Assembly: GCF_001194135.2 (NCBI RefSeq)
Contig: NC_068981.1
Coordinates: forward strand, 71,632,360 to 71,696,359
Length of the DNA: 64,000 bases
From: Octopus bimaculoides
Taxonomy: Eukaryota
Direction of reading: 5' to 3'
Under the pieces are notes generated by a model that was not told the DNA's origin, ran no database searches, and saw only the letters and a program-made list of their open reading frames with translations. The position numbers and the translations under genes were made by a program. Numbering within the stretch: position 1 is the stretch's first letter; each line of letters opens with the position of its first letter. This document shows, in pieces, positions 8,420-43,465 of this stretch.

Positions 8420-8567
8420 TCAGTTGGTGAGAGTATTCCAAGCTTGATATAAACGAGTTGTAATGGCCTCTAGAACTGGTTGGGTGCAATGAATAGCCGT
8501 GGAACCAGTTTTCAGAGAAGGTGCCAAAGATAGCAGAGATTCCAGAGTGGTAGAAGTATCATTCAAC
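8420..8567 (-). CDS. M28B-like gene exon 12 (terminal)
   Basis: tattttttcag|G TTG AAT GAT to AAC TGA. RLNDTSTTLE resembles GCPII RMMNDQLMFLE. Confidence 0.82.
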
Positions 8568-11172
8568 CTGAAAAAATAAATTTGATAATGCACTTAAAAG
8601 AAAATAGCTTTCAAGTATTCATAGACATATGTACATTTTAGTATACAATTTTTATAGTTTCTATGCAAAAAATTTACACAAGCTGTTGAATCTATGCTGT
8701 CAGTGACTCTAAAAAGTGAACATCACACTGCTTTATTTAATCTAGGAGGCTGGTAAATAGTTTTATTCCTACTAGTAAGAAAGAAGGTAATTCAAAACTA
8801 ATTGTTACCATTTGATTTTAATAGTATGTGAATTTCCAAAATTGTAGAAATCCTTTAGATCAAAGTGTATAATACAAAATATACTTATACAAGCATATAA
8901 GTAAATACAAATCTTGGAATGCTTTGGTTTTGGTAACGTTGAAGAATTTGTCTTTATGTTTTTAGTTCCCCACTCATAACTGAGTATGGTTATCTTGATG
9001 TTGTAATGTAAGGTAGAATGGTTTTAGAAAAGGTTAAAGGTGAAACAGTTCTATATCACAATCACCAAAGATTTCCTTCTCACCACTAACTATTTAAACA
9101 TGTTAAAAAAAAGAAAAAGAAAAAGAACAAAATGAATTATTTAGAATACCTGGTGAGTGGAGCCAATATTTTATGCAATGCCAATGATTCCTGTTGACAA
9201 TCTTTTTTTAACCACTGGCCATGTGATGATTTTTTATTCTTTGGTGGAATATTTGAATGTTTAAAAGCTGCTGGATGATTGATAGTACCAACTAAGGACA
9301 ACATTTCTGACATAGCATCACTAAGGGCATCTGAAAAGAAACAGTTTAAAGTTACTCAACCAAACCAGTTATTGTTCCACTTTTATAAAAATGAAGTTAA
9401 GAAAGATGTGGAAGAGGGAGACCCAGGAAGACATGGGACGGAATATCGAAAGCTGATTGCAAGATACTGAGCTTTATGAAAAGACAGATATCTGGCACAT
9501 TGCTGTACTCATGAAGGACTGTCCGCCATAGCAGAACTGATACCACTGCTAGTGCCACATAAAAAGCAGCCAGTACACTTTGTGGAGTGGTTTGGCATTA
9601 GGAAGGATATCCAGCTATAGAAGCCATGTCAAAACAGACAATGGAGCCTTTCTTATAAACATTAGCCTAGTACCAATATAAGAAATCCTTGTTTTAGAAT
9701 GTTTGTGAAGTAGTGCATGGTAAAATTTACATATACGCACATGGATGTTGAAAAACTGAACAGCTTCAATTTAACTCATCAATATTATCAAAGCGAAACA
9801 CAGGTCATAAACAGTTCTTAACACAAAGATAGCTAAATTAACCCTTTTTGCACCAGCTTGCCTGAGACCGCTCCTGGTTCTATAGTTTTAAAGTGAACTA
9901 AGTTAAACTAAACACCAGCTTAATAACAACAAAATTAGTTTACAAAATATTTTTAAAATGACAATTATTTTACAAAGTATTTTCAAAATTAATTGAAACA
10001 CAGTGACAAAAGAGTTTATACCTACACATATATTATGGTCTTCACAGTGAAATAATTTCTTTATTTAATACAATCAGAATGGATATAAAAATATATGTGG
10101 GGAGGGGAAACTAGAGGATATTTGGTAACTATTTGGGGCCCTAATTAAAATCAATAATGTTGAAGTAGGGATGTTTTTGCAATGTGTAACTGTATTTAAG
10201 ATCCTGTCTTAATATTAGCTTACACTTAAAGATGGCAAGCAGGCAGAATCACTACTGTGCTGAGCAAATTGCTTAGCAGCATTTCGTCTGTTTTTATGTT
10301 CCGAATTAAAATGCCGCCAAGGTTGACTTTGCCTTCCATCCTTAAGAAGCCGATGAAGTAAGTACCAGTTGAATACTGGGGTTGATGTAATTGACTCACC
10401 CTTCCTCTGAAACTGCTGGCCTTGTGCCAAAATTTGAAACCAATATTAACTCACACCTCATACATTCCTTTCTGAGAAGTGAATGTGGTAAAAAAAAAAA
10501 TAATCAGTCTTCAGCAATGACTTAATATTAAAATGTTCTATTACAAGTCTAGGAAACACAAGCACTATAACCCACACATATACATATGATGGACTTTTAG
10601 TATCAACCTACCAAATTTACTCACAGGGTTTTGGCCAACCCAAAAGTGTAGCAGAAGGCATTTGCCTAAGGTACTTTGCAGTGGGACTGAACCCAAAATA
10701 ACATGGTTCAGAAGTGAACTTCTTTCCCACATGTCCATTTTACAAATAACTGATTTAATTTGGTGTCAGATAGATGAAGTAACATATTAAAGGCATCTAA
10801 GTCAGATATTTCAGTCTTCCAGCTAACCTGCAGCAGCAAACAGGAAATCACTCCCTTGTTCAGTAATGAGATCCTGATATTAGCTAAATCACATCTGGTG
10901 TAGTTCAGTCTCAGCAAGACACCATCAATAATTTCCTCATCACTCCTTCGTGCTGAAGTGGTGATGTTTTGCTTTTCTGACAAGTCCTAATAAGATCAGA
11001 ATATGTCCTAGGTTATTTCCTTTACTGGCTAGAATAATAATAATAATATTTCGGATGTGTATTTGGTGGGCAAGATTCTTGATGTGAATACGTGTGTTGA
11101 AAGAGATACTATTAAACCTTGGGAGAGGCATTATGCATGTGTTTATTACCAGCATAATGCCTCTCCCAAGGT

Positions 11173-11208
<36 letters not shown>

Positions 11209-14200
11209 TCAGTCATTGTATATTGTTTTTCCCTCATTGCATGAATATTTCAAATTAGCCTTTTAATATTCACTTCATTAAATATGGTATCCTATAATCT
11301 TTAATATTTATGGAGGAATATGATTTTACTATGTTCAATTATGAAGTGAAACAAGTGAATTTGATCTCAATTTAGAACTAAATTAACTAGTATTGACAAA
11401 CAACATGAAGTAATCATCTTCTGAACAATAATAAAAGCAGCAACTATATTAATTATTTTTTAACATTTTCATTTTAAGATGGTGTATGAATACGTGTGTA
11501 CATGCAAAGAACAAAACTTACTAAATGAAAGAGTTTGAAAAGTACGGCATTTCTCGACAAGAGAACCAACTTGTTGTTCAACAGCAGTCACTAGGTCTAC
11601 CAGGCTGTAAGCATTCCTCCCTACGCCATCAGATAAACTCAACAATACAAGGGAGCTAACTCGAGCTACCGCCATATGGTAGCGAAAATGATGCCTGCTA
11701 TCAGGTTCTGTTTTTATCTCCTTCGGCTTCTGCAGGAAAAAAACAAAAACAAAAAAAAAATATCAATATATATTTCCATATTATTGCTATACTCAGGAGA
11801 GAGTGAGTAATTTAAATATTGAGGCAACATATTTACAAAGCAATAAACCTTATTTTGCAAGTAAATTCTAAAATAGGTTGTTGAGTCAATAACAACCAAA
11901 CATTTAAAGAACAGTCTTGATAAATATTTGAAGAACATTTAATTTGAAATACTCTTCTGATATGAAAAATCAACATCTTTAGACTTCTAACATTCAGAGG
12001 AAACAATAAAGTAACAGTCGAAAACATTGAGATGATTGTTGAGCTTAAATTAGCTCGCTCCGCCTCGCACGGGGTCGCGATGCGACGACCGCGACCCCGT
12101 GCGGCAGGAGTTCGGCCGGCGGCAAACGGTCAACTCGGAACTGGTACGGACTGGGGGAAATGGCAGATCCAAAGTAGTATTTTAAGGATCCATGAAAAAA
12201 TACGACTTTGGACGTATTTATTGCAAGACATAGTTAGGTAATTTTTTCTGACGTTTTACATAGTTCAACCTGCAAAAGTTAAATGTATGAAAAACAAAAT
12301 AGGAATTTTGAAAGAAGTATATCTATAAAACTAGTTTTCAAACGTCGAATAGCTAAGGGGTTCACCAGAATAAAATGGTAATCATAGGGATCCATAGATA
12401 AAAAAAATGGCTGAGAACCATGAGTTAAAATATGATAGAGGATCAGAAATATATGTCTTGCAATAGAGGAGATACATAACTACCCCAGTTGGTGGGTGGG
12501 GTGGGGAAGAAAGGATGGTAAAGCTGTGTCAGGGCACACACCCAAAGTTACAGGGATGGATATATAAATGAAGTGGTAGAGAGGATTGGATAGGATGAGT
12601 GGGCAGGTGAGCTTGCAAGAGTGCAAAAAAAGAGTGGATCCAGTGAGTGAATATGACTGGAAAGGAGAGGAGTTAGGAAGATGAGTTGCATGGAAGAGAA
12701 ATATTTGTTCTAAGAATATGTCGTCTTTTAAGAGACAAAAGAAAAATTCATGTAACTCAAAAAATACCTTAGCAGTTTCAGGTGCATATTTACAAGTGAA
12801 CTGAATACTGGGCAGCCATTTACTCATAATTTCAGTGTGTGTATCACTTAATGGCATTAATATACCATTTGAAGTTAAAGGAAGTGGAAGTTTGGGTTTC
12901 TGGTAGAAAGTGGTAGCCAATATACTCAGTTCTCTTTCATCAGGATCAGGAACCTGAAATAGAAATTAATTCAGAATGTGATAATAAAGTTGTTTCAGTT
13001 CTAACCATTGAAATACATAAAATGTTCTGTCAATAAAGAAGAAAAAAAAACCATTCAGTATATTAAGATACTGTTAAAACTGTAACTGTGGTTTTTATTT
13101 GGACTTTGGGCACTAGACTAATAAATATAACCCACTAGATTCCAGCAAAGAAGGAAAAGAACTTGTAACTTGCTTTACTTGTGTAAGCATTATATTATAA
13201 CAATCTGCAAGAATGTGAAACTGTTCATTAGACAACAAAGCTGGTATTATTTGATTCTTTCACCTGCACGATTTTCACTAAGGTAAAGAAGAAAAAAAAA
13301 AAACTCAGATTTTTTTGTGTGGAATCAAGTACCCTGACCTCCTAATATGCTGCAAACCCCTTACTTTTGTTTGGAAAAAAAAAAGCGGGGTACCAGACTG
13401 CCCTCATATCCTGGAATCATTGAAAAAATTTTTTTTTTCATTGAATGTATTCCGGTGACCTCCTAATAGGCTACAAAACCATTTTTGGGGTCCAGAAAAC
13501 GGGATGGGGTGAGGTGGAAGCCTCGGAAATTTTATCCCCCACCCCCATTGATCTTTTCACCCGCATGATTTTCACCCGCATGATTTTCACTAAGAAAAAA
13601 AAACTCAGATTTTTTGCATGGAATTAAGCACCTTGACCTCCTAATATGCTGCAAACCCCTTACTTTTGTTTGGAAAAAAAAAAGCGGGGTNNNNNNNNNN
13701 NNNNNNNNNNNNNNNNNNNNNNNNNNNNNNNNNNNNNNNNNNNNNNNNNNNNNNNNNNNNNNNNNNNNNNNNNNNNNNNNNNNNNNNNNNNNNNNNNNNN
13801 NNNNNNNNNNNNNNNNNNNNNNNNNNNNNNNNNNNNNNNNNNNNNNNNNNNNNNNNNNNNNNNNNNNNNNNNNNNNNNNNNNNNNNNNNNTTAGATAACA
13901 TTTTGCAGAAATATATTTTCAAGGGAGTGTGGATTACATTAGATTGAAAATTCAAAGAAGTTTGAAATGAATAAGTGAAAATGTAGAGGTTATAGAAGTT
14001 AGTGGTAATGAAGTATGTGGAGAGATAACGAATGATAAATTCATCTAAAAAAAGGATAGAGTTTTTGCATGTACGTGTGAAACAAAGTAAAACTCTTTTT
14101 CTTTTTTTCTCTTTTTTCCTTGTTTCAGTCATTTGACTGTGGCCATGCTGGAGCACCATCTTTAGTCAAGCAAATCAACCCCAGGACTTATTCTTTGTAA

Positions 14201-15074
14201 GCCTAGTACTTATTCTATTGCCAAAAATTGCAAAGGGAAAATGCTTTAGTTTTTCAAATCTAATCTGCAACCTGGGGTTATTATATATATATTATATCCA
14301 GTTCCCTCAAAGAAAATGCATCAAGCTAAAGTAACCTTCTCAATTTTAACACATTTCGAGTAATCTTCATTTTATAACAGATTCATGGGGTATACTAACC
14401 CTTTAACATTTGGATTACTGTTAAATGTAAAGCTTATTTATTCATATCATTTTGAATTAATCATGCACTATCTAATAGCTTTGACACTTCAATGTTGTAC
14501 TTGTTTAGTTTTAGAATGACATTGTAAGGTAGGCGTAAGAGGCTCAATCTAGCCAGTTTGAACATAAAACAACTGGAATATTTGAGCTGGATAGAGCTAG
14601 TTTAAGCAAAAAAGGGTTAAATGACTGGAATCATTTTTAACTAATCTTGTTATGTTTCTGTCCCCACCACAGAAAGGTGATGAAAATTAACAAATGAATT
14701 AACAAATTAACTCACTTCATTTTTGCATTTAACCAAATGAACTTAATTCTCTCTTAAGCAGAAAAAATACGAATATGCATAAATGATTAAATGCTTTCAT
14801 ACTGATTCCCTTATTTTTTATTTTCTTCAAAACAAAGCCTCCTGTATCAAATAAATTCAAGTAAGTATTCAATGCACAAAGCAAATAATATATAACATAC
14901 CATATTCATGGCTCTCAGAATGAGAGCTGTTGCCATGTTATCTGTGTGTGCTGTAAAATGGTTACACCATTTTCCTGCCTTATCCATCAGATCCACATAA
15001 CCAACACCACGACTATTCAAGATAAAACTATTTCTCTGCAAAAATACAAAAAAAAAAAAATAATAATAATAATG

Positions 15075-15107
<33 letters not shown>

Positions 15108-18100
15108 TCTTGGTATAAAAGATGGGCTACAGCAAATATTCTGCTCAATACCACAGATTTGCTTGTCAGTTGTTTGACCTTAACCAGTTGAGCATGTCCC
15201 TAAGTGGCTCATGTGCATCTCTGATCATAAGCAGAAGTAGTGGGGAAGCATCATAGCCATGTGTTGAGAGGAATTGGGGGCAGAGTGAGTAATTCACCTC
15301 AGGAAACATAGGTGTTTTGTTCGACAACCTTAAACACCCTCGACCTGAAGAGTAACCGGGCCCCACCTACAAGGTCATGCACTGTTTATCTTAATAGGAG
15401 ACCACCATGTCGTACACGTATGGTTGTGATGCATGCAACTGATGTACCCTTATCGAACAGGTAGTCATGATGGGTGTACTGGGCTTCGTATATTTTACCC
15501 CAGTGTCACTTTGATGGCATGCATGGCTTTCTCACATAATAATGATAATAACAACAATAATATATAGATTTTAGTGTGTGGATAGACATGAGAGTGGAGT
15601 GGCCTGCAACAGGTGAAGTGCATGAGAGAGCGTGAAGAGGGGAAGATCTGCTGGGAGTTTGACAGAAGTCAAGTAGTGTGTGTGTGTGTGTGAGAGAGAG
15701 AGAGAAAGGTGGGGGGGACATGGCCAAAAAGGACATTCATGTGTGCATGGCCACGATTTCACTTAGCTTGACATGTTTTCGCAAGCACAACAAATCACCA
15801 GAAGTCTCAGTCCCTTGTCATTTCCTCTGTAAGGCTCAACAACCAAAGGTCATATTTCACCAGTCTCTCAAAACACACTTTGTTGTACATGCACACTCAC
15901 ATTGCACATCCAGTGGAACACATTGGCTTCATTTCTTTCAAGCCTTTGCATGTCCTCTGCAGTCACAGTCCATGTTTCACTGCCATGTAGCATAGTTGTT
16001 TGCACACAGGTATCATACAATCTGCCTTTCACTCTGAAGGATATATATTAGTGTTTATACTGTTTTAATAATTCTTGTAGAAAATTATTTCCACTAAAAA
16101 TTCATAGTTAACTAAATATCTTAACATGGAAAGGTTATGTGAAAGCTACAACGACAAAAGATAAAGAAACAACTTGAATGTTTTAGTTACCTTCAGGTAT
16201 TCTTGGATCCCAGCTTCATCACTGCCTGTAACAGTACCCCATGAATAAAACTTGATGGTTCGCTGTGGATGCCATCCTTCTAATTTGCGAACATGCAAAA
16301 GACTGTATATTAATTCCAGTAACATAGCAGTGCTTGACAAACTGGCCATTTGGAAAAGACTGGAAACTGAACTGTTTAAAGTGAGTGAAGTTTCTGATTC
16401 AGCCGTTCCATACAGTCGTTGAGTTCCAACTAATACCATCTCATCTATAGAAATAATGAAACAAAACAATAAGGAATCTTGTTTCCTCAGAAATGTAGCA
16501 AGATGTCTGTAACAGTATTTATATATATGCTGCTTTCTGTGTTGTAGTGCTGCTAGAGTTATTCTTTTGTATTTCATCCCTTCAGGATGAAAAAGTAAGT
16601 ATCTGCAGTACACTGGTGTTAAATCAAGTAGTGTTGTACCTCCTCCAACAATTTCTTTTTTTTTTTTAATGTTTAGTGAGAGAGAGAAGGCACTGTACTT
16701 ATGACCTTTTATTTTATTTTATTTATTTATTTTTTTTTTGTCTTTGAGACTAATGGGATGGAGGGAAGTAGCTATTCTGAAACCAAATACCAGATCTGAA
16801 TACTTTCAACAGAGTGAACTCCACAAAAGGCAAACGAGGATGAAATGGTAGCATTAAACCAAGAGATGAATTAAACCTACCACTCAAGTATATTCAGAAT
16901 GCAAATTGCCTAAACAAGTACTGAAAGGCATTCCCAATCTAATGCATTTATCAATTCCACTAATCTATCATCCTGGACTGGTATTTTATTTTACTGACTC
17001 TAAAAGAATGAAAGATAATGCTGACCTTGCTGAGATTTGAACTCAGAACACAGAAAACTGGAAGAAATACTGCAAAACATTTTGTCCTATGCTCTAACAA
17101 CTTTACCAAATTGCTGTCTTAGCCAAAATAAATAAATAAAATAAAAAGTAAAATATAATAAATAAATAATGTTTTCCCCAAAATATTAAATAAAATATAG
17201 GTTGTTGTTGTTTAGCACCAGGTTCATGCTAATTAAGTAGGCTTTTCATCAAAAGATAGGATGGTTTTGATTGTAATGTCTTTCATTAAAGGCATTCCAA
17301 TGAAGACCATCCTATCTTTTATTCAAACATTGTATCTAGAACAACATTATCCAATGTCTTGTTCTTATAGGGGATTTATGTAGGCGGTCAATTTGTTAGA
17401 AACAGTAATCAAATATTCCACATATGTCTACACTTGATTTAGCATTTTTAAGATGATACACAACCTATCTGAAAAATACTAAAATCATGTTTGGGACAGC
17501 AAGTAACACTTCATAAACCATTGGGTTGCTGGTGAAGACATTGTTTCATCAAATGAAAAAGAATATTAATTGTAACATTATTTTCATAAATAGATACATC
17601 AGAAAGCTAAAACATAACATTAGTCTTCACTTTTTCAAGAGGGAATGAAAGAAAATCACTAATGAAATATCTTCAAGCATGTTTTTATTATTATTATTAT
17701 TATTATTTTATTCCTTCAGTATTATTTGAAGTACATTTTCCTGATTATAGGATTATTTCAAAGTGAACCAAAATTACCATAAGAAAATAACATTTTTGCT
17801 TATCATTCTTCCAGCATCAAATATATATCTTTTAAATCAGACAAATTAATCTTAAGGCACAATGATCACTTTTAAGACAACAGTAAGAATCACACTGAAT
17901 GAAAACATGGGAAATAATCAAGTTACCTGGTTTGGTTTTTCCATAGAGAGTTCCTTCAACATTGGACACAGTGTGGCTTTTCAAACAAGAATTGAACTTG
18001 AGATACAAAGTGTTGTGTCCCTCAACTATAAAAGTAAAACATATATAACTTATGGTAATCATCATCAACATCAGCATCATCATCATCACCCTTGTTTAAC

Positions 18101-21100
18101 GTCTGCTTTCCTTGCTGGCATGGGTTGGATGATTTGACTGAGGACTGGCGAACCAGATGGTTGCACCAGGCTCCAATCTGATCTGGCAGAGTTTCTACTG
18201 CTGGATGCCCTTCCTAACACCAACCACTCCGAGAGTGTAGTGGGTGCTTTTATGTGCCACCAGCACAAGGGCCAGTCAGGCGGTACTGGCAATGGCCATG
18301 CTCAAATGGTGTTTTTTACGTGCCACCTGCACAGGGGCCAGTCCAGCGGCACTGGCAACGACCTCGCTCGAATATTTTTTCACATGCCACAGGCACAAGT
18401 GCCAGTAAGGCAACACTAGTAACAATCACGCTCAAATGGTGCTTTTTATGTGCCACTAGCATAGAAGCCAGTCAGCTGCTCTGGCAACGATCATGCTTGG
18501 ATGGTGCTCTTAGCGCTCCACTAGCACGGATGCCAAATTTATCAACTATACTTCCAATCTGGTTATCTTTAATCATCAATCTTTAGTCTATCTGCTGTCT
18601 GATGATTAAGCCATTTACTTGACTTTTCAATATCAGAGATTAGTCATCACTGGATAATCAGTTCTACTGACTTCTAAACAATACTTGTGGAATCCAATTC
18701 TTTGTCATACCCACAAGAATATTTGAACACAAGCTAACATAGTAGTTTTATAGTGCAGCCACTGCTAAAATAGTGAGTTGTCCTATACTACTATACCTAC
18801 ATTCAGCTAATAGGTTGAATCTTTAGAACAGTGGGGCTGAAAATGAATGAAATTAAGATGAAGTATCTGGTAGAGAACATTAAGATTCCAGAGAAGATTA
18901 TGAATGTAGACGGGAAGCCACTGGAGTTGGTTGAGGACTTTCTGTATTTGGGAGCAAAGATTGGGAACACAGAGAGTGATGTAGTTGAGAGGAAGAGCAA
19001 AGCCTGGGCGGCATGCAACAGTTTGTGATTTTTATGGAAACCAGACCTTCGTAAAGACCTGAAGATCTATCTCTTCATTGCTGCAGTGGAGTCTGTACAG
19101 GTCTGAGACTTGGACACTGATCAAGAAACTCAGTCAGATGGTGGATAGGTGTTACAAGAGAATGCTGAGGATGGCTCTGAACATTAATCAGTATACACTG
19201 AGGATGAAGAACTCAGAGTTGTAAGAGAGTCTCCCAATAGTTAGCTCAAAAATAACAGAGTTGATACTGCACTCAGTGCTCCTGTGGGAGCCCCTACACA
19301 GACATACTAGAAGAGGGAGACTGAGGATGACATAGACATATGTTGATGCCCTAAGGACAGATGCTGGTTTCTGGGAGACACAGGACATGGCAGCAATGAT
19401 GAAGGACAAAGATCGCTGGAGAGAACTCGTCCATGGATCTTGGGAATTTTACCCACCCTAGATAGATACAAGTTGAGCACTGGGGTTAACGTAATCGACT
19501 TATTCCCTCCCTTGAAATAACTGGCCATATGCCAAAATTTGAAACCAATATTTCCCCATGACCAGACATGTTATCACAGAAGATTGGAAATGAAGAACAC
19601 TGCTTGTGTGACAGGGACAATCATTTACAACTATCATGAGACGTCAAAGGAGAGAGTAACACACAAAAAATATATACATATAGCAGGAGTGGTTGTGTGG
19701 TAAGAAGCTTGCTTCCCAGCCACATGGTTCTGGATTCAGTCCCATTGTGTGGCACCTTGAGCAAGTGTCTTCTACTATAGCCTCAGACTGACCAAAGCCT
19801 TGTGAGCAGATTTGGCAGATGGAAACTGAAAGAAACCTGTTGTATATATATCTACGTGTGTGTGTGTGTCCATGTTTGTCCCCTGCCATTACCAATTGAT
19901 AATTGGTGTTGGTGTGTTTACATCCCTGTAACTTAGCAGTTCAGCAAAAGAAACCGATAGAATAAGTACCAGGCTTAAAAATATAAGTACTGAGATCGAT
20001 TCAGTCACCTAAAAATTCAAGGCAGTGCTCCAGCATGGCTGCAGTCTAATGACTGAAACAGGAAAAAGGTAAAAGATATACACACGCACATGCACACATA
20101 ATGGACTTCTTTCAGTTTCCGTCTAACAAATCCATAAGAACGTCTATAAAGACAAAACAATATCATACCTGAATGGCTGATTCCAATATTGTATGTGGTG
20201 TTTAAACTTCCCCACCATGATATTGGTGCAGCAGTTGTATCAGCAAGAGTGGTAAAAATTCTCAGAGCAAGTGCAGCAGAGATATTGTATACAAGCATAG
20301 ACTTATTGCCACCTTCATTCACATCTGAAAAATTAAATTCATCTAAAATACAAAAAAATTAATTTTAAAAGATAGGGAAGCATTGATACACACACAAAAT
20401 ATTACAGGGTGTTCTGGTAAAAAAATTTTCAGGAACAGCTTGATATATTGGTGAACAATCAACAGTATTTGAAATCAATGATTAATGATGAAGTTGAGAA
20501 AAGGTTAGCTGACAGGGAGGACTGGAAGCCATCTGGATATTGAAAAAAGTAAACTGTATCATGATAACTCACACCAGATATCAAAGTACTGACATCATGA
20601 CCGCTGGTCAATGCTCCGTGAACACTGTAAAGGCTGTAAGATATGACAGCCGCAATGGAGGATATGATGCTGTGGCCAACAGGAAGAGACACAGCAGGTG
20701 TTCTGACTGTGTCTGCACACCAGGATTCATCCCCAAGTCTTTGAATAAGACTTTAGGCTCAATTCAAAGTTATGTGAAGGTGCTGTAGACTATAGTCAAA
20801 CCCTAGCTTGAGAGGGTTGCTGCTGGAAGGCCATATATGTGGAAGCAGAATTCAGCTCCTTGTCATACTTCCAGAAAGAGTCAAAAATAGCTCTCAGAGA
20901 ATTTCTATGACTTCACCAAACCCAATTTCTGACTTCCTAATTCTCCCAATTGTAATCCCATGCATTACTATACGTGGAACATGGTTGAGAAGACACCAAT
21001 TGCTCTGCTTGCAACACCAAAGCTTCCCAGGGATGCAGTGAGAAGCACATGCACCAGGTTCCAGAACCATCTTGAGGCTGTAGTGGAAGCTGAGGGTGGC

Positions 21101-24100: not shown

Positions 24101-26885
24101 GCTGCGCACTGCTGTGAAGATGGTTACTGAAAGCAAACCCCTTGTATGAAGCACCTGTGAATAAATGGTTATTGAATTTACCCCACCTGAGAACTTCATT
24201 CTTCGTATTTCCAGCTCCTTGAATCAAAAGAATAATTATAATGGAAGAAGATACCCCAAAAGTATCATAAAAACCTTCCTTCCATTATACACTCCTCTAC
24301 ATCATTTGTTAGGATCAAGCACCTTTGTATTTTTTTCTGTTCATTGATTCTATGTTGACGGATGAGTAATAAATCTGCAGAAAAAATAGCCACAGCACAG
24401 TCATGTAAGCACAAACAATATTCAGAGTGCATTTGGGGTAGGTGAGCATTGTAGATGAGTACGAAGAATGGATACGCTTTTGTAGTGCAAGCAAAATCTT
24501 TGACTGATTGTCCTTTTTGTTATCACAGATCAATTTGCGATATGCATAACATAATTTACAACTGAGCGTACCATGCAATTCTGAATCAGTGATAAATGAG
24601 GTTGCATGTATATATGGTTCACTTACCTATGCCAAGGACAACAACTCGTATTGGCCTTGCAGATACATACAACAAGGAAGCTAATCCAGTAATCTAATAA
24701 CAGTACTGTCTTGCACATAACGTATTTTGTTTCTTTTCTCTAGTTCCTAGCAGGAGTGGCATTATCTTTCATACTCCAAGGATGAAAAAATAAGTACTCT
24801 AAATATAGTCAATATCTTCCCTACAAAAATTGTTTTTGTGCTTACATAAGACATAAATATCTGAAAATTTATATAAAATTTTTATTACGGCCATAAAAAA
24901 CAAAATGTTATTACCTGATGAGATATATGAGATAGCATAGCTGTCAGATTTTGGATAGTTTTCAGCATGCCAACGTGCCTCAGTGTTACTTTCCGGGTCA
25001 GTGTATAAAAGAACTCCGCGTAGTCCAGCCATTTGAGCATTATATATCTATAATACAAAAAAACAAACCTTCAGTTATTATTCTTTATCATATAGACAAT
25101 TAACAACAATTAAAGTTTCACAGTCAATATGACTTAAAACTGTGATTTCCAACTCCATTGAAAATCACTAAGCATTTATGAAACCATCTTTATTTCACTA
25201 AAGGGGCCAAATCTAAAATGGACAATCACTATTTTTATAATATTATTTCAAACAAAGTGAGTTGGCAGGGTCATTAGAGTTTTGCTTGTGATCTGATTCA
25301 CTGCATTCTGAGTTCAAATCCTGCTAAGTTTAATTTTGCTTGTCATCCTAACATTGTTGATAAATAACGTAGAAGCGCAATTCTGGAAGCAATTCTTTTT
25401 TTCTTTCTTAGTCTATATTTTCCTTTCATCTCTTTCTCTTGGAATCAGTTATTTTATGTTATGAGAAAGGTTATGGAAGACCATTCTCAGCATCACTTTT
25501 TTCAGATATTCGAGGATGATTAAGCAAGGGCAGGCAACTTCTCATAAAAAATTTTTTAAAACTTATATGAAACATTCTCTTACCAAAAATATCTGTTTAA
25601 CAGATATTTTTGGTAAGAGAATGTTGATTTCGAAACTATAGTACACGGATAATTTATATTTATGTAATTTTCATTGTCTTGCCCGCATACATTTTGGTAT
25701 TTCGCTGAATTTCATTTGAGAACAATAAGGTCTTAGTAGACACATTACATGTGATCTTCTTCTAGCACATTAACAGTCCACCTAGTGGTCTTCTTTATAT
25801 ATACATATATTGACATTCGTGCGGGTGACACGTAAAAGCACCCACTACACTCTCTGAGTGGTTGGCGTTAGGAAGGGCATCCAGCTGTAGAAACTCTGCC
25901 AAATCAGACTGGAGCCTGGTGTTGNNNNNNNNNNNNNNNNNNNNNNNNNNNNNNNNNNNNNNNNNNNNNNNNNNNNNNNNNNNNNNNNNNNNNNNNNNNN
26001 NNNNNNNNNNNNNNNNNNNNNNNNNNNNNNNNNNNNNNNNNNNNNNNNNNNNNNNNNNNNNNNNNNNNNNNNNNNNNNNNNNNNNNNNNNNNNNNNNNNN
26101 NNNNNNNNNNNNNNNNNNNNNNNNNNNNNNNNNNNNNNNNNNNNNNNNNNNNNNNNNNNNNNNNNNNNNNNNNNNNNNNNNNNNNNNNNNNNNNNNNNNN
26201 NNNNNNNNNNNNNNNNNNNNNNNNNNNNNNNNNNNNNNNNNNNNNNNNNNNNNNNNNNNNNNNNNNNNNNNNNNNNNNNNNNNNNNNNNNNNNNNNNNNN
26301 NNNNNNNNNNNNNNNNNNNNNNNNNNNNNNNNNNNNNNNNNNNNNNNNNNNNNNNNNNNNNNNNNNNNNNNNNNNNNNNNNNNNNNNNNNNNNNNNNNNN
26401 NNNNNNNNNNNNNNNNNNNNNNNNNNNNNNNNNNNNNNNNNNNNNNNNNNNNNNNNNNNNNNNNNNNNNNNNNNNNNNNNNNNNNNNNNNNNNNNNNNNN
26501 NNNNNNNNNNNNNNNNNNNNNNNNNNNNNNNNNNNNNNNNNNNNNNNNNNNNNNNNNNNNNNNNNNNNNNNNNNNNNNNNNNNNNNNNNNNNNNNNNNNN
26601 NNNNNNNNNNNNNNNNNNNNNNNNNNNNNNNNNNNNNNNNNNNNNNNNNNNNNNNNNNNNNNNNNNNNNNNNNNNNNNNNNNNNNNNNNNNNNNNNNNNN
26701 NNNNNNNNNNNNNNNNNNNNNNNNNNNNNNNNNNNNNNNNNNNNNNNNNNNNNNNNNNNNNNNNNNNNNNNNNNNNNNNNNNNNNNNNNNNNNNNNNNNN
26801 NNNNNNNNNNNNNNNNNNNNNNNNNNNNNNNNNNNNNNNNNNNNNNNNNNNNNNNNNNNNNNNNNNNNNNNNNNNNNNNNNNNNN

Positions 26886-26958
<73 letters not shown>

Positions 26959-29900
26959 CACACACACATGCATATAAAGACATTTGATTACATATGTACA
27001 CAAAACACTCTCACACCTTTTCTGATTATTTCAACAAGTAATACATGTTTTTAAATAAACATCTCTGTATGTCAATAAATTTAACTAGACTTTCTTCTCT
27101 ATTTAGAAATAAGTCTTAATAAATATTGCTTAACTCAACCAAACCAAATTTTCTTGAGTAAACATTTAAAAGTACTATATATAAAAGTTTTACTAAATAC
27201 AAACATTCATTCTAACAGTTCTTTCCTCAACATACAGATTTTCATTTATATATTTACCAAGGTTCAAACTAAATCTTTAATTACTGTATTCACTTAAATA
27301 CAAACTGATCTCATACATATGATGTGACTTAAACTTTTTTAAATTAAGGTCATTTATTTTATGCTTTTACAGATTAGGACTAAGCTTTGACTAAATTCAA
27401 TGCAGTGAACATTACATCTCTTCTTCAGATTGTATACTAAACATCATTTTTGTATTTAACATACAAGGCACAAGCATGTCTGTGTGGTAAGAAGTTTACT
27501 TTCCAATCAAATGCTTTTGGGTTAGGTTCCACTACATAGCAATTTGGGCAAGTGTCTTCTATTATATTATATATTATTAAAATTATTAAAATTTTAGATT
27601 AAAATCTTAGATAAGTATTTATACGGTATATGCCTCACAGCATGGTTTTGGACGGGTTTTTCATTGACTGAGTTGTAGAGTGGTGGTTCGTCTCTAAATT
27701 AGTTATATTCATATATATTACGAAACTCCGTGTAATATTATACCGAATTTTACCTGTAAGGTTGGAATAAGTTTTTATTCCCTAATATTATTACTATATA
27801 TACATATATATATAAACATATATATATATATATATGCGCCCAGGAAAGTTTATATTGTATTTTTATATTAATTCTAAACAAAGATATTATGCACATTTAA
27901 ACTCGTTTAAATATAAAGAGAATGGTAATTCCACATCACTAGCCAGCCACGTATACCCACAAACTCTGTTTACACTATACATATACAAAGTTACCAAATC
28001 ATTCTTCAACAACCACACAAATCAATGCACTTTTGTCCATGTTGATTACAAACAGTTCCTTACCTTCTTTGAAATAGATATCTTGCCTGTTCGTATTATT
28101 GCAATCTGGTCAATGAGGGTGACTTTCAGTTTATTTAGGTAAGCAAAGTCAACTGACCTCCCATAATTGGCATAATACAATAAACCCTAAATAAAAACAA
28201 AATAGAAAAAATAGTATTAAATTGCGAGTAAACACAAACATACAGTTCAAAAACCCTCCATGTCACATTCTGAGTTCAAATCCTGACAGAGCTAATTTTT
28301 TCATGGCAAATTTCAATTTAACATATGCTTTGTTTACTCAAATCAGGAACTCTGAAGTTGTTAAAGGAATTACAAAGCATTCACTGGGGTCAATTCCATC
28401 AAATCTAAACATTATCGAACACACATACTCAATATATGTGCTTTGTTTGTTTTCCGGTAGGCTGCAATTTAGCACAGTGGAGACAACTCCTTCAGTTCGC
28501 CTCCAATTCCTTTCAGGTATGTGATGTTGATAAGCTACAAAAATGGTGAAACATCAATATCCATTACTCCTGAATGGGATTTGGGGTGAGTTGCCTCACT
28601 TGCTTATGACTTTTGGGTATTTTAACACCCATACTTTAAAGGACTCATCTCCACCACATTATTTTGCAGCTTACAGGTGAACAAGCAAAGCACATACATT
28701 AAGTATGTGTGTTCGATAATGTTTGCAACACTAGCACTATATCTACTTTATATTTGAATCTATTAAGTTAATTTAATTTCTGGTTTTATAATAATGTCAG
28801 GTACTTTTTTTTTAGAAGTTTTTCATGCTTGCATATACACAAAATGTTTTTTTTCTTTTGTTATTGGAGCTATTCTTTTAACAGCTGGACATACACAAAC
28901 AGACAGCTGAAAACTATTACATAAGGAGTGCTGTTGTTTATTAGGTGACCAAAAATACAAATGATACATTAAAATGTAAAGGTTTCTTTTTTACCTAATA
29001 TACAATGTCTAACAAAATGATAATGAAGTAAGAAGAGCAGAACACTGGTAATGAAGATGAAATAAAATAGTAGCTGACAAATATACACAGGAAAATATCT
29101 AAAAAGCCTGCAGACTTGATCAAACTTGACCACCTATGTCAGACAAAGTATTTAAAACAAGAATGAGGAACATAGAGAAATAAATTCATTTTAATTTAGC
29201 TTACCAGTGGAAGCTTGTACAAACAAGTAATAGTTAATAGAAATTCAGTACTTTGAACAAAGGAAAGAATTTATGATACAAAGTTACATAACAGGGCTAT
29301 GTTCTAAAAGTAATGCAATGGACAAATATATTTAACATAACACAAAAAATAATTTTTACTAAAAAGAATAACAGTTTTGACCAATAAAATAAAAAGTGTC
29401 TGATAGAAATGACAATAAAATGTTCTTTGATATTTTCTTTACCAAATAAATATTTGGAAAACAGAAATTAATGTGTGTTGCAATATATCATTAGGGGTGT
29501 GCAGAGAAGAATATACAAACATGAAATTTCATTAGTCTTTGTCTGTGTCTATGCTTCATTGGCTTCAGCTAGGGGACAGAGCAGTTATAGTGTTTTGTCA
29601 TTCTATGGTGCACCCTCCCAACCCACTCTCGCCACCTGTACCAGAAGTCTTTCTCCTCTTACCTCTACCAGAAGTCTCTCTCCTCTTACTACTACCAGAA
29701 GTCTCTCTCCTAAGCACTTCTAACAGTTACCTATACGGAATGCCTCCCCTCCATCCCTGTCTAGATTCTATCTCCCATTAAACCAGTGCCACCATCACAT
29801 AAAAAACACCATTTGAGCGTGACCAACGCCAGTGTTGCCTGATTAATATCCGTGCCAGTGGCATGTAAAAAGCACCTTTCAAGCATGGCTAATGCCAGTA

Positions 29901-31417: not shown

Positions 31418-33168
31418 CATACATACATACATACAATGGGCTTCTTTCAGCTTTCATCTACCAAAAATCTATTCACAAGACTTTGGTCAGCCTTTTGAGC
31501 AGATTTAGTTGCAGAAGACACTTGCCCAATGTATCATACAGTGGGACTGAACCCAGAACAGTCTGTTGGGAACCGCACTTCTCACTATACATCCATGCCT
31601 GTGCCTAACCATCCCTGCACCTGTTGAATATAGAAATACTTATAGAAAAATTAGGTAAAAATAAATCTTTTATCGTAGGTAAATATTAATTGTTAACTTA
31701 CTTTGAAGTTATCGTTACTTGTCTCAAACATGTAGCTGTGTTCGTCTTGTTCAACATGGTTTGCTTTAGTCTTAGAAGAAATTTTAGGGATCGAACTGCT
31801 GTCAGAGTTTAAGGTTTTCAACTGGGCACTCAATTGAACTTGTCCTTTCCCATTAACAATCTCCATATAATTCGGTTCTTTTACATCCGGGGTAGTAACT
31901 AGAACATTGTATGTAAGAACTTCAACTTTGTCAAGTCCAACTTGGTAAAATTTCTTTTGAATGTAATCACTGAATTGATTATCGTAATCCTTTCTTGGCT
32001 GTTGTGGAAGCTGTTTTGGAAAATCCCTACAATAGAAAGATTTTAAAACAATTATTATATCAATCATTAACTTTTTTGTTTTTAATTAACACAGAATAAT
32101 TTGGTATGTTATAGAAGTAGCCAGAAATATTAATATCAATTACCTCAATTCCTATATTTTTCTTTTCTTGTATTCTAACACCAGAAATATTCAAAAACTC
32201 TTTCCTCTACTCTACACCAGATCAAATTAGACAAAAGATCAACTTATGCCAGCATGGTAAACACATATTATTTGATGATGATGATGATGATGAAATTACA
32301 AATGTCTCTTCACAAACATATTTTCATGTGTTTAAGTCAAACTATTAAGAAGTACAAATTTGAAAACCTAACCTGTATTTCACTTCGTAAAAAGAAAGAT
32401 CCTAAATATTTATTATCAATCATAATAAAATAATAAACCTCCAGATAAACTAATAAACCTTTCTAACAGAAGTTGAGAGGTGCAAATAATAGATGGAGAA
32501 ACAGAGCGAGAGGAGAAAACAATTTACTAGAGTTGCTGTTTAGTTCCAGGTTAGCTTTGGTCAAGCAGACTTATGAAAAAGGCATTAACTGTTTTGTGTA
32601 AGGAACATTAATATGGAGAAAACATGGGCAAAATAATTTAGAGAAAGGTATAGCATAAATTTTCTGTCTAGTTTTATATAACAGCTTATCAAAATATAAT
32701 AAATAAGTAAGATTTCTAAATATAAACATCTGTATAATAAATCCATGACCTGAATATATGTTAAAGAGCGGGAATAAGTTTATTCTTCTTACCATCTTAT
32801 GTATCTAAAGAGCAAAAACTTTTTCTCCCAGTTAGAGGTCTCAAAAAGCTAGTTAACTGCTTTTGTTTAGCTCCAGTCCAGACCTGACCAACCAGATTTT
32901 TTTTTTAACAAAATGATTCCAGCTATGACTATCCTGCTATTCTGTCATTCCACAAGTACAGTTAACCCTGACCTCCCAAATCCAATGTGTCTAGATTTTC
33001 TAATTGGTAGAGATTTCAAAGAAATGTACTACCATTACTGCTGGTTGAAATGATTACGTAGAGGCTACCTTGTTGACTTACTACTATTTCCTTCTAAAAT
33101 TAAATTAATGAAAAACATTTTTTTTCCTATCATATGTAAACACTCCAAGTGTTTAGTCACAAGAGTAG

Positions 33169-42200: not shown

Positions 42201-43465
42201 CAAATAACCACATTTCGATAAAAGCATATTTCCCTGCCAAAACACTCCAACAAAATGTATAGCTGTGAAAATTAGTAAAAAGAGTTAGGATTTTATTTAT
42301 AGGAAATATATCACGGGATCAACACGTTCAATTCAACAAGTTTGTCTAAAACCTGTAAGCAATATTAGTACTGCGTGTGCCCTGAAAAAGATATCAAATC
42401 AATTATTTGTGACCTAAATGTCATTTCTTATATCTGATATGAATATCTTAGAACTTCATTAATTTTGATTTCCCTCATTTTCTATTTTGTCCATAAAGAT
42501 TTCTCAGGTACATTACTGAAAATCTTCATATGGGAATAGAAGCACGGACTCAATGAATTCTGACACCTTTCATATTTGTATTTGTTTTTTTAAGAGAAAT
42601 ACAGTTATATCTTTTACAGATCCACAAATGATGACTGTAATCAATAAGATCCGCATTCTTAAAACATTAGGCAATTATCAAAATAAAAGAGCGCAAAAAA
42701 ATAAGCATATGCACAAATTAGATTGAACTCATATTTAAGGAAAAGAAGAAAAAAACCAATAAAGAACAATGAGAAGTAGAATGAACTTGAAAAAATTATA
42801 CTTTCCTACCTAATAAAATCCATCATACGGTTTCCATTAATATAATACATGATATTTCCGTGTATGGACTCGAGATGTGTGTTAGAACAAAGATCAGACA
42901 GTTTAGAATCCAAGTGACATTTCTGAAAGCAAATCTTTTTATTTTCTGTAGTGTCCAAATAATCCTCGGATGATCCCAAAAGAGGTTGTCTTTCATTTTC
43001 AGTACTATGTGAACCAACGCGAACATAATAACCGATTAATAATCCCATAAGGAAAATAATTAGGATAGCCAAACTGATCAAAATTAATGTAGAGTTTGAA
43101 CCACAGGATCCGTGACGGCTTCGGGTGGCTCGGAAAACATTAGTTGAAAGGGGAAGAGGTGAGTAATTAGCACTTAACAAAGATGAATTGCTGGTTCCAT
43201 TACAATTTTTATCATGAGCACCACTGCAGCTACTGATCCAGTTGTAAGGTCCTTTATAGCATAAAGGTATTGAAGAGCTACTACTGTGAGCTAAAAGTTG
43301 TTGAACTTCGTTGTCATCTTCAGTATGACCTATTGTTGTCGCAGATACTGCACTCCATGGTTCCAATAAATGTTTGTTTGATTCAGTAGAAGTTTTTTTG
43401 CAACATATATCCTCATCGAAGTTTACAGTAGTCAAGTCTAAAGACGAGAGCCTGTCCGTCGCCAT
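8420..43465 (-). CDS. M28B-family type II membrane protein (GCPII/NAALADase/TfR fold, NAALADL2-like), probably catalytically inactive; 12 coding exons, 867 aa
   Basis: Exons 42810-43465, 31702-32026, 28064-28186, 24915-25047, 20169-20324, 17927-18025, 16191-16444, 14901-15035, 12768-12953, 11522-11729, 9150-9330, 8420-8567. All GT-AG, phases join, total 2604 nt. GCPII-like motifs: YANYGR, GVLLYTDP, WWGSLNTTYNIG, NVEGTLYG, GWHPQRTIKFYSW, RGVGYVD, FRYHMAVA, RLND. Confidence 0.88.
9150..9330 (-). CDS. M28B-like gene exon 11
   Basis: ttcttttcag|AT GCC CTT to ACC AG|gtattc. Open frame, phases 1 and 2 fit both neighbours. Confidence 0.82.
10215..10445 (+). mobile_element. Old, CpG-decayed SINE family B copy
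   Basis: ggcagaatc..gcttagcagcatttcgtc..gactttgccttccatcc, same orientation as the 44041 cluster. Confidence 0.65.
10600..10710 (-). mobile_element. SINE family C head fragment
   Basis: ggccaaccc..tgcagtgggactgaaccc..aacatggt. Confidence 0.6.
11110..11178. repeat. Perfect 27-bp inverted repeat with a 15-nt spacer
   Basis: Arms 11110-11136 and 11152-11178 are exact reverse complements. Confidence 0.95.
11522..11729 (-). CDS. M28B-like gene exon 10
   Basis: ttttcctgcag|AAG to TTT A|gtaagt. HFRYHMAVARV matches GCPII MFKYHLTVAQV. Confidence 0.9.
12052..12159 (+). pseudogene. 28S rRNA fragment (end of a GC-rich expansion segment plus adjacent conserved core) in intron 9
   Basis: GTCAACTCGGAACTGGTACGGACTGGGGGAA matches the recalled LSU core ACTYAGAACTGGYACGGACNRGGGGAATCC. 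It is preceded by a 14-bp perfect GC stem, 12066-12079/12090-12103. Confidence 0.75.
12768..12953 (-). CDS. M28B-like gene exon 9
   Basis: tctatttcag|GTT CCT GAT CCT to AAG|gtattt. 62 open codons, VPDPD matches GCPII LKSPD. Confidence 0.85.
13691..13890. other. Assembly gap
   Basis: N run. Confidence 1.
14901..15035 (-). CDS. M28B-like gene exon 8
   Basis: tttttgcag|AGA to ATG|gtatgt. RNSFILNSRGVGYVD matches GCPII ENSRLLQERGVAYIN. Confidence 0.9.
15060..15106. repeat. (TAA)n microsatellite just upstream of the exon 8 acceptor
   Basis: Direct reading. Confidence 0.9.
15170..15555 (+). repeat. Interspersed repeat of uncertain family ending in a (TAA)-like tail
   Basis: GC-elevated block with sharp boundaries in intron 7. 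Family not identified. Confidence 0.35.
15590..16000 (-). mobile_element. RTE LINE fragment
   Basis: MLHGSETWTVTAEDMQRLERNEA..WMCNVSVH, similar to 38340-38420. Confidence 0.7.
16191..16444 (-). CDS. M28B-like gene exon 7 (degenerate peptidase core)
   Basis: tttctatag|AT to AAG|gtaact. EGWHPQRTIKFYSW matches GCPII EGWRPRRTILFASW. Confidence 0.92.
16790..17110 (-). mobile_element. Old SINE family B copy
   Basis: gaaagataatgctgaccttgctgagatttgaactcagaac. Confidence 0.6.
17927..18025 (-). CDS. M28B-like gene exon 6
   Basis: ttttatag|TT to CCA G|gtaact. TVSNVEGTLYGKTKP matches GCPII RIYNVIGTLRGAVEP. Confidence 0.88.
18058..18540 (-). mobile_element. RTE 3'-tail copy with internal subrepeats
   Basis: (CAT)n then gtttaacgtc..ggatgcccttcctaac..gtgggtgcttttat. 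Confidence 0.85.
18690..19445 (+). mobile_element. RTE-clade LINE RT/C-terminal fragment
   Basis: GLKMNEIKMKYL..VEDFLYLG..AWAACNSL..SETWTL..KRMLRMAL with stops. Confidence 0.8.
19683..20075 (+). mobile_element. tRNA-derived SINE family C copy
   Basis: gcaggagtggttgtgtggtaagaagcttgc..ggattcagtcccattgtgtggcacc..gatggaaactgaaagaa. Confidence 0.8.
20169..20324 (-). CDS. M28B-like gene exon 5
   Basis: tttttcag|AT to TCA G|gtatga. PISWWGSLNTTYNIG matches GCPII DSSWRGSLKVPYNVG. Confidence 0.88.
20405..21226 (+). mobile_element. Tc1/mariner-superfamily (maT/DD37D-like) transposon, internally deleted and decayed
   Basis: TA+CAGGGTGTT start and a degenerate inverted end. Reads RVAAGRPYMWKQNSAPCHTSRKSQ..PNSPNCNP..RFQNHLEAVVEAEGGYFE* with stops. 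Confidence 0.8.
22495..22680 (+). mobile_element. RTE 3'-tail copy
   Basis: ggtgttaggaagaacatccag..ccaacccatgccagcat..(GAT)n. Confidence 0.75.
22786..23268 (-). mobile_element. RTE 3'-tail copy with a ~62-bp minisatellite
   Basis: Near-consensus tail plus about 4 tandem units at 23027-23268. Confidence 0.85.
23843..24240 (+). mobile_element. Possible solo LTR remnant
   Basis: Starts TGTAG, has a tandem agatctcrcctgcaaccatt repeat, AATAAA at about 24160, and TGG after the apparent end. Confidence 0.35.
24915..25047 (-). CDS. M28B-like gene exon 4 (PA domain)
   Basis: tattatag|ATA to TCA G|gtaata. IYNAQMAGLRGVLLYTDP matches GCPII VKNAQLAGAKGVILYSDP. Confidence 0.9.
25571..25625. repeat. Perfect 55-bp palindrome (27-bp arms, 1-nt centre)
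   Basis: aacattctcttaccaaaaatatctgtt-t-aacagatatttttggtaagagaatgtt. Confidence 0.95.
25805..25924 (+). mobile_element. RTE 3'-tail copy running into a gap
   Basis: cactacactctctgagtggttggcgttaggaagggcatccagctgtag. Confidence 0.8.
25925..26885. other. Assembly gap
   Basis: N run. Confidence 1.
26886..26967. repeat. (CA)n microsatellite at a gap edge
   Basis: Direct reading. Confidence 0.95.
28064..28186 (-). CDS. M28B-like gene exon 3 (PA domain)
   Basis: tttatttag|GGT to AAG|gtaagg. GLLYYANYGRSVDFAYLNKLKVTLIDQIAIIRTGKISISKK. Confidence 0.9.
29640..29720 (+). repeat. 27-bp tandem repeat, about 3 units
   Basis: ccagaagtctytctcctcttacctcta units. Confidence 0.8.
29790..30115 (+). mobile_element. 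RTE 3'-tail copy
   Basis: Tail consensus ending in (GAT)n. Confidence 0.85.
30545..31170 (+). mobile_element. 5' fragment of an RLE-clade (HERO/R2-like) non-LTR retroelement with a C2H2-like finger
   Basis: FSCCGKVFSSYIRLRIHQGKVC, a stop at 30941, then KPKIKWPKANDAASYKKFDNEV. Confidence 0.55.
31440..31610 (-). mobile_element. SINE family C head
   Basis: gaagacacttgccc..cagtgggactgaaccc. Confidence 0.7.
31702..32026 (-). CDS. M28B-like gene exon 2
   Basis: tctattgtag|G GAT TTT to TTC AAA|gtaagt. YIQKKFYQVGLDKVEVLTYNVLVTTPD resembles GCPII [21 protein letters not shown]. Confidence 0.88.
33823..34247 (+). mobile_element. SINE family C copy ending in an RTE-like (GAT)n tail
   Basis: tRNA-like head at 33823, then gcatccagctgtagaaa..ggacattaaatgatgatgat. 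Confidence 0.7.
35330..35660 (-). mobile_element. Old SINE family B copies
   Basis: gaagaaaaaagttgaccacggtaagatttgaactcagag. Confidence 0.5.
36419..36862 (-). mobile_element. RTE 3'-tail copy with a 66-bp tandem duplication
   Basis: Tail plus ORF end. gccaaaggtctcggtc..tttgcctc occurs twice at about 36732-36863. Confidence 0.8.
37603..37668. other. Assembly gap
   Basis: N run. Confidence 1.
37870..38560 (-). mobile_element. RTE LINE 3' portion joined to the common RTE 3' tail
   Basis: REKLGIRGIRCGVQ..YGHMMHMD..CVKKC..LGLTEAM continues into the tail found at many loci. Confidence 0.8.
38690..40190 (+). mobile_element. CR1/L2-like LINE remnant (APE endonuclease and C-terminal region), heavily deleted
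   Basis: NDFNTHN..LHQSVSSPTH..LNLFLT (APE). A RT-x-TLWN-like C-terminal motif and an A-rich tail near 40180. Confidence 0.65.
42810..43465 (-). CDS. M28B-like gene coding exon 1: cytoplasmic tail, transmembrane helix, stalk
   Basis: First in-frame ATG in good context (aatATGg). Hydrophobic LILISLAILIIFLMGLLIGYYV. Donor AG|gtagga, phase 2. Confidence 0.85.

Follow-up and report, generated by a model that had tools for sequence, protein, structure and literature searches.

A selection-maintained, predicted non-catalytic M28B pseudo-peptidase of Octopus bimaculoides and its molluscan relatives

A 64,000-nucleotide (nt) stretch of contig NC_068981.1 of Octopus bimaculoides (assembly GCF_001194135.2, positions 71,632,360 to 71,696,359 of the forward strand), in the following called the window, consists of eukaryotic DNA that is rich in AT and in repeats and is interrupted by five assembly gaps. 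It harbors an M28B-like gene on the minus strand, which extends from position 43465 to position 8420 and comprises 12 exons with a coding sequence (CDS) of 2,622 nt for a protein of 873 amino acids (aa). The M28B family contains PSMA/GCPII and the transferrin receptors (TfR) and is a classic example of an enzyme scaffold reused as a receptor. An earlier note on this DNA, made from the sequence alone, had placed a gene intact in its reading frame and dead in its active site, encoding an M28B pseudo-peptidase, at positions 11522 to 16444. These positions indeed contain real exons of such a gene, which are only exons 7 to 10 of the 12.

The exons were placed from tblastn and hidden Markov model (HMM) matches of scallop homologues, followed by direct reading of the splice sites. 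All 12 exons possess an AG acceptor behind a polypyrimidine tract, a GT donor, and compatible phases. Exons 11 and 12 were not detected in HMM searches with subfamily profiles; they were recognized by eye, with a weak RLND…LE motif and the splice phase as guides, and were then validated by an exact match to RefSeq. If the in-frame acceptor located 18 nt further inside exon 5 is used, the protein has 867 aa. An exact-sequence look-up identified the 873-aa and 867-aa models as the RefSeq entries XP_014783935.1 and XP_014783937.1, isoforms X1 and X2, under the name “aminopeptidase NAALADL1,” and also recorded orthologues in O. sinensis and O. vulgaris that are at least 90% identical. The open frame over 12 exons with clean splice phases, as claimed before, was consequently confirmed by the GT-AG sites and by the exact matches to both isoforms. 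The orthologues of Argonauta hians and O. sinensis are likewise composed of 12 exons of equal or nearly equal size. The pair of exon 5 acceptors (20342 and 20324) is also annotated in O. sinensis, resulting in proteins of 876 and 870 aa, and the annotated Argonauta model represents the form with the shorter exon 5 (156 nt).

One of the assembly gaps is located inside intron 8, between exons 8 and 9, as a run of 200 N. A tandem repeat of about 300 bp (13258-13391 and 13555-13690, with 81-nt core copies of 94% identity) directly adjoins this run and was probably the cause of the gap. The protein alignment is unbroken over the junction of exons 8 and 9 in comparison to the scallop, Argonauta, and O. 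sinensis orthologues, and the ungapped loci of O. sinensis and Argonauta have the same exon count, indicating that no coding sequence was lost in the gap.

Evaluation of the active site needs to consider the residues of GCPII, in which H377, D387, E425, D453, and H553 are the zinc ligands and E424 is the catalytic general base (GCPII numbering, used throughout). Octopus residues were assigned to these positions by phmmer against human GCPII chains in PDB and by three MAFFT alignments, two of them with 70 and 111 sequences, the larger of which included a 750-aa goat GCPII (P0078) with human numbering. None of the five zinc ligands and no general base was found. The motif GTQRLYG has Q512 at the position of H377, with VLVGTQR paired to ILGGHRD by phmmer. 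D387 is replaced by an alanine residue in the MAFFT alignments, inside an 18-aa Ser-rich insert. WGTVTGS stands in place of WDAEEFG, there is no glutamate between W572 and S578, and E424/E425 are replaced by V/T when SWGTVTG is paired with SWDAEEF by phmmer, or by T/G in another alignment. YVDLMD has M605 at the position of D453, with GYVDLM paired to AYINAD by phmmer. The residue at the position of H553 is A or K, depending on the alignment, and a deletion of about 11 aa follows immediately. In addition, all of the substrate-binding residues of GCPII, R210, N257, R534, R536, Y552, K699, and Y700, are replaced.

The Pfam Peptidase_M28 model no longer detects the domain, and the PA domain alone passes the cutoff (residues 332-392, E = 3e-5). 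An HMM of canonical M28B proteins, applied to every stop-free segment on the two strands of the window, yielded matches confined to the known exons, indicating that there is no alternative exon that would restore HRD, EE, or D; alternative exon use, by which the motifs might have been recovered, was thus not found on either strand. The three motif replacements, the Ser-rich insert, and the lost LYH553 segment described in the earlier note agree with these alignments, with the insert being 18 aa in length instead of approximately 16. Its statements that the protein is non-catalytic and more eroded than a point-inactivated enzyme are supported by the replacement of zinc ligands, catalytic glutamate, and substrate-binding residues and by the failure of the Pfam model, respectively. 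As judged from its sequence, the octopus protein is a catalytically dead M28B pseudo-peptidase.

The fold, in turn, is retained. In a phmmer search against PDB, GCPII (5e-26), GCPIII (3e-20), NAALADL1 (1.4e-18), and TfR1 (4e-14) were found. An AlphaFold2 model of the octopus protein (target P0320, on the 111-sequence alignment) reached a mean predicted local distance difference test (pLDDT) value of 72.8 and a predicted template-modelling score (pTM) of 0.75; most of the ectodomain lies above a pLDDT of 85. Disorder is predicted for the cytoplasmic tail, for the stalk, and for the Ser-rich insert (residues 517 to 531, pLDDT of the insert below 50). The strands and helices bearing the ligand positions of M28 enzymes are in their usual places in the model, namely, the strands 502-512, 565-572, and 598-606 and the helix 529-559. 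The top matches of a Foldseek search against PDB were GCPII, GCPIII, NAALADL1, and TfR1 with E values of 1e-36 to 1e-30 and target-normalised template-modelling (TM) scores of 0.64 to 0.71 (0.64 to 0.67 for GCPII, 0.70 to 0.71 for TfR1), which is a comparison at the level of the fold only. Membership in M28B is indicated by the sequence similarity of the ectodomain and by the predicted three-domain fold of protease-like, PA (apical), and helical domains on a type II transmembrane anchor, so that according to the model the three-domain ectodomain of GCPII and TfR is retained.

The gene is kept under purifying selection. The CDSs of Argonauta hians (L001) and O. sinensis (L002) were recovered by threading the annotated proteins onto the loci. 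Compared to O. sinensis, the proteins are 96% identical over the whole CDS, with a nonsynonymous divergence (dN) of 0.017 to 0.018, an unsaturated synonymous divergence (dS) of 0.10 to 0.13, and a dN/dS ratio of 0.14 to 0.18. Over 2,045 nonsynonymous and 571 synonymous sites, 35 and 67 differences were counted, respectively; the binomial p value against neutrality is 3e-21 for the whole CDS and 6e-6 for exons 7 to 10 alone. Compared to Argonauta, the identity is 71% over the whole CDS (dN 0.17, dS 1.1 to 1.5, ratio of about 0.15) and 79% over exons 7 to 10 (dN 0.125, dS 1.02, ratio 0.12), making the “dead” domain the most conserved part of the protein in this comparison. O. bimaculoides and O. 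sinensis do not differ in the degenerate motifs. Argonauta has an almost unchanged Ser-rich insert, and its other motifs are closely similar without being identical (GSQRLYG, WGTVMGN, YVDLTD). Across these cephalopods, the ratios of 0.12 to 0.18 are far from neutrality, which supports the earlier suggestion of a maintained protein. Moreover, an intron-free Logan contig of 3209 nt from SRR27666080 (L003) encodes a complete orthologue of 883 aa (P0024), which shares 41% identity with the octopus protein and joins the octopods at 100% bootstrap. This indicates that the gene is expressed and correctly spliced in a related cephalopod.

Table 1. Features of the M28B-like gene, listed in the direction of transcription. 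Positions are those of the window; sequence motifs are given with their residue numbers.
Feature	Length or residues	Position	Strand	Content
Exon 1	656 nt	42810..43465	-	Start codon 43465-43463; cytoplasmic tail, transmembrane helix, stalk
Cytoplasmic tail	~125 aa	In exon 1	-	Ser/Cys-rich
E-V-Q-Q-L-L	E53-L58	43309-43292	-	Acidic dileucine-like motif in the tail, exon 1
Transmembrane helix	127-148	43087-43022	-	LILISLAILIIFLMGLLIGYYV; helix 125-152 in the AlphaFold2 model
Exon 2	325 nt	31702..32026	-	N-terminal part of the protease-like domain (FYQVGLDKVEVLTYNVLV); best HMM match among the exons
Exon 3	123 nt	28064..28186	-	Start of the PA (apical) domain (LLYYANYGRSVDF)
Exon 4	133 nt	24915..25047	-	PA domain (GLRGVLLYTDPES)
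Exon 5	174 nt (X1) or 156 nt (X2)	20169..20342	-	X2 via acceptor 20324
Exon 6	99 nt	17927..18025	-	Strand leading into the pseudo-catalytic domain; equal size in Argonauta and O. sinensis
Exon 7	254 nt	16191..16444	-	GTQRLYG, Ser-rich insert, WGTVTGS
GTQRLYG	510-516	16427-16407	-	Q512 codon 16421-16419
Ser-rich insert	523-540	16388-16335	-	SLTLNSSVSSLFQMASLS
WGTVTGS	572-578	16241-16221	-	
Exon 8	135 nt	14901..15035	-	YVDLMD
YVDLMD	601-606	14999-14982	-	
Assembly gap		13691..13890	.	Intron 8
Exon 9	186 nt	12768..12953	-	Equivalent of GCPII ~480-545; arginine patch and substrate-binding residues absent
Exon 10	208 nt	11522..11729	-	No His at the H553 position, ~11-aa deletion, HHFRYH, then start of the helical domain
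HHFRYH	H708-H713	11693-11676	-	Exon 10
Exon 11	181 nt	9150..9330	-	Helical (dimerisation-like) domain; in the exact RefSeq match
Exon 12	148 nt including stop	8420..8567	-	RLNDTSTTLE…TLTN, stop codon 8422-8420; 148 nt also in Argonauta and O. sinensis

Related proteins were collected with a profile of molluscan homologues searched against 1.84 billion representative proteins, followed by BLAST and name look-ups. The resulting clade comprises cephalopods (Octopus, Argonauta, and P0024), gastropods (Haliotis, Gigantopelta, Arion, Physella, Biomphalaria, and Candidula), and bivalves (pectinids, Pinctada, Mytilus, Saccostrea, Mactra, and Solemya). In a neighbour-joining (NJ) tree of 642 columns with 100 bootstraps, it was monophyletic at 100% bootstrap, as was the cephalopod subclade within it. 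H377 and E424 are missing from every member, and all members that were aligned have lost about 11 residues behind the H553 position, with an HH-x-x-Y-H motif at this place in most of them. Both the deletion and the motif are absent from canonical M28B proteins, TfR, and NAALADL2, and the motif may serve as a new element for the binding of a metal or a ligand. The remaining ligands are distributed unevenly: D453 is present in the bivalve members, E425 in most and D387 in some of these; gastropod members possess D387 and E425; and D387, E425, and D453 are all gone from the cephalopod members. The large Ser-rich insert was found in octopods only. This distribution over three classes points to a stepwise erosion that had begun before cephalopods, gastropods, and bivalves split. 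The ancestor of the clade would already have been devoid of H377, E424, and H553, the cephalopods would have lost D387, E425, and D453 later, and the octopods would have gained the Ser-rich loop of 18 aa where the metal site had been.

Taken as a whole, the data are best explained by a mollusc-wide, dead M28B type II surface protein that is non-catalytic and maintained by selection, an explanation held with considerable confidence. The octopus product, 873 or 867 aa long, is taken to be a glycoprotein that crosses the membrane once in type II orientation; it keeps the three-domain layout of M28B, but its di-zinc center and substrate pockets are dismantled. By analogy, it would most likely serve as a non-enzymatic binding protein on the cell surface, for instance, as a receptor, co-receptor, or adhesion scaffold, which would probably dimerize via the helical domain and could possibly enter endocytic traffic via the acidic dileucine-like motif in its tail. 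The motif is kept in four cephalopod sequences, reading E-[VI]-[QR]-[QN]-L-L in O. sinensis, Argonauta, and P0024, and E-V-Q-Q-L-L may be an endocytic sorting signal. The former active-site cleft, lined by the insert and the HH motif, would be the candidate surface for a ligand; the HH-x-x-Y-H motif together with the octopod loop could have created a new ligand- or metal-binding surface there. Whether the clade represents a third independent conversion of an M28B enzyme into a non-catalytic surface protein, after TfR and vertebrate NAALADL2, which predates the split of the three classes and has been maintained by selection since, is a proposition for which the balance is even.

Several points weigh against this explanation or parts of it. 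D579 and E580 are positioned only 3 to 4 residues downstream of the E424/E425 position, and three histidine residues, H708, H709, and H713, are close to the former position of H553, so a rearranged, non-canonical metal site in the octopus protein is formally conceivable. Non-cephalopod members of the clade, which partly keep D387, E425, or D453, might bind one metal ion. Transcription in O. bimaculoides itself is deduced from the RefSeq isoform models, and the role as a receptor would follow by analogy from the likeness to TfR and NAALADL2.

An entirely different explanation would be a decaying gene, a unitary pseudogene in the making with an open frame that is a coincidence or an annotation artefact. 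The failure of the Pfam Peptidase_M28 model would agree with decay, as would the outcome of the first word-indexed protein search, which used a rough concatenation of the exons and returned two scallop proteins only, with no cephalopod among them. The exhaustive profile search and the exact look-up, however, later retrieved the entries of Argonauta, O. sinensis, O. vulgaris, and O. bimaculoides. The frame is open over 12 exons in O. bimaculoides and O. sinensis and over 866 codons in 12 exons in Argonauta, and a full-length protein is annotated in O. vulgaris. The dN/dS ratios compared to O. sinensis and Argonauta already contradict decay, the clade covers three classes of molluscs, and the transcript contig of the related cephalopod is full length, which leaves decay as a hardly credible option. 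If the gene is not decaying, it could still be NAALADL2, with the activity lost only once, in a bilaterian ancestor; the earlier note had left open whether it was a NAALADL2 orthologue or a case of independent loss. NAALADL2 shares with the octopus protein the type II M28B architecture, a long cytoplasmic tail, and a transmembrane helix ending with GYYV, and in both of them SWGGT or SWGT replaces SWDAEE. The clade adjoins NAALADL2 in the NJ tree, with 62% bootstrap for a group of the molluscan clade, NAALADL2, and hemichordates, but the pairing of the clade with NAALADL2 received 26% bootstrap, and the long branches, those of the molluscan clade, NAALADL2, the hemichordates, and TfR, all cluster together, the pattern expected from long-branch attraction. 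In the tree as in the other comparisons, NAALADL2 was represented by database proteins of mammals. The other comparisons do not indicate a reciprocal best similarity or shared derived indels and substitutions. The best BLAST matches of NAALADL2 are canonical enzymes such as amphioxus P0021, with the molluscan clade at ranks 96 to 193 of 198; the HMM of the molluscan clade scores NAALADL2 (137 to 165 bits) lower than TfR (about 222 bits) and canonical M28B proteins (about 298 bits); and in hhalign the clade scored lowest with NAALADL2 (378, compared to 844 with the canonical group). Furthermore, NAALADL2 keeps H377 in most sequences, shows D453H, and has neither the deletion after H553 nor the HH motif. 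The evidence from HMM, BLAST, hhalign, and indels, together with the weak bootstrap values of 26 to 62%, favors an independent loss of activity in the molluscan clade as far as the sequences allow a judgment. Orthology to NAALADL2 finds no support and is rather unlikely, albeit formally conceivable, and the loss is clade-wide, not specific for the octopus.

A further explanation would be a functional analogue of TfR, which would have arisen from an M28B peptidase and would take up iron in molluscs. Some members of the clade bear the automated names “transferrin receptor protein 1-like” or “2-like,” the Foldseek scores are slightly higher for TfR1 than for GCPII, and the loss of catalysis in a fold that was kept mirrors TfR. 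TfR1 and TfR2 are the textbook case in which the M28B peptidase fold has become that of an endocytic receptor without catalysis, and the octopus protein has the three-domain ectodomain in common with them. Its substitution pattern differs, however, from that of TfR, which has Q/D/K/G/D/D at the ligand positions, shows the motifs GAQRDSW, WSAGDFG, and YINLD, and keeps D379 and D453. Grouping with TfR received 33% bootstrap, the octopus protein lacks an equivalent of the transferrin-binding RGD that TfR1 carries in its helical domain and shows SEM in this column, and there is no evidence for iron regulation or transferrin binding. Transferrin receptors are treated as non-enzymatic relatives within M28B (PMC10794815), and a stand-in function for TfR has been speculated for molluscan M28B proteins, albeit from the razor-clam ScNAALAD2, a canonical-type paralogue (PMC12896564). 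Overall, a TfR analogue is improbable.

Comparison with the other relatives shows where this protein departs from known systems. GCPII/PSMA (FOLH1) is the best match in sequence and structure, with a conserved PA domain and a conserved scaffold of the strands and helices that bear the ligands; at an identity of about 19 to 20%, the octopus protein differs from it by the absence of the five zinc ligands, E424, and the S1/S1' residues. Human NAALADL1, the ileal aminopeptidase (PDB 4twe), has a complete zinc site. It belongs to the same family with the same domain order, but the octopus protein has none of the zinc ligands. GCPII, moreover, outscores NAALADL1, and the clade stands apart from the canonical group in a tree that contains no identified vertebrate NAALADL1. 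The RefSeq name NAALADL1 is, from these comparisons, a label transferred by similarity rather than an orthology call. NAALADL1 is described as an active human intestinal aminopeptidase in the literature (reference 5 of PMC10794815). NAALADL2 resembles the octopus protein as a type II M28B protein with a long tail, a replaced pair of catalytic glutamates (WGGTAFG compared to the octopus WGTVTGS), and a replaced D453, and it is regarded as non-enzymatic and conserved; the differences are the absence of the deletion after H553, of HHFRYH, and of the Ser-rich insert and the retention of H377 in most species. Molluscan “NAALAD2-like” paralogues from Dreissena, Magallana, and Liolophura (P0084, P0095, and P0111) have a damaged site, too, with E424S, E425K, and H553G/N, but keep H377, D387, and D453 and group with canonical lophotrochozoan enzymes. 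In the hemichordate M28B proteins P0022 and P0033, the EE pair is absent.

The full HDDEEDH signature is present in just 88 of the 157 best profile matches. Because loss of the catalytic site is recurrent in M28B, the octopus protein is not a new kind of biology, and M28B pseudo-peptidases as a category are already known; the clade, on the other hand, is apparently undescribed, and the octopus gene is misnamed. Literature searches found no earlier account of a molluscan clade of M28B pseudo-peptidases, nor of NAALADL2 as a pseudoenzyme. The intact gene with a dead active site that had been postulated from the sequence proved to be present in RefSeq already, under the name of an active enzyme. 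The clade adds a conserved group of dead M28B proteins with a graded loss of metal ligands over three classes of molluscs, a natural series in which to follow the loss of a di-zinc site from a protein that keeps its fold and its dimer scaffold. It also calls for a correction of annotations. Its members in octopus, scallop, abalone, oyster, and snail carry enzyme or receptor names assigned automatically, a mixture of NAALADL1-like, GCP2-like (“glutamate carboxypeptidase 2-like”), and TfR1- or TfR2-like. Such names would mislead degradome counts, conclusions on neuropeptide and N-acetylaspartylglutamate (NAAG) metabolism in cephalopod neurobiology, and searches for iron-uptake receptors in molluscs.

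Other coding remnants were observed in the window. An open reading frame (ORF) fragment at 60418-60885 on the minus strand, upstream of the M28B-like gene, matches Pfam Ribosomal_L1 (E = 2e-12) and probably represents one exon of an RPL10A-like gene. In introns 5 (18831-19028, plus strand) and 7 (15868-16032, minus strand), there are ORF fragments that resemble reverse transcriptase by reading, with no match in Pfam. An ORF at 46528-46917 on the minus strand contains a GIY-YIG nuclease domain whose E value of 3e-4 narrowly misses the Pfam cutoff, pointing to a remnant of a Penelope-like retroelement.

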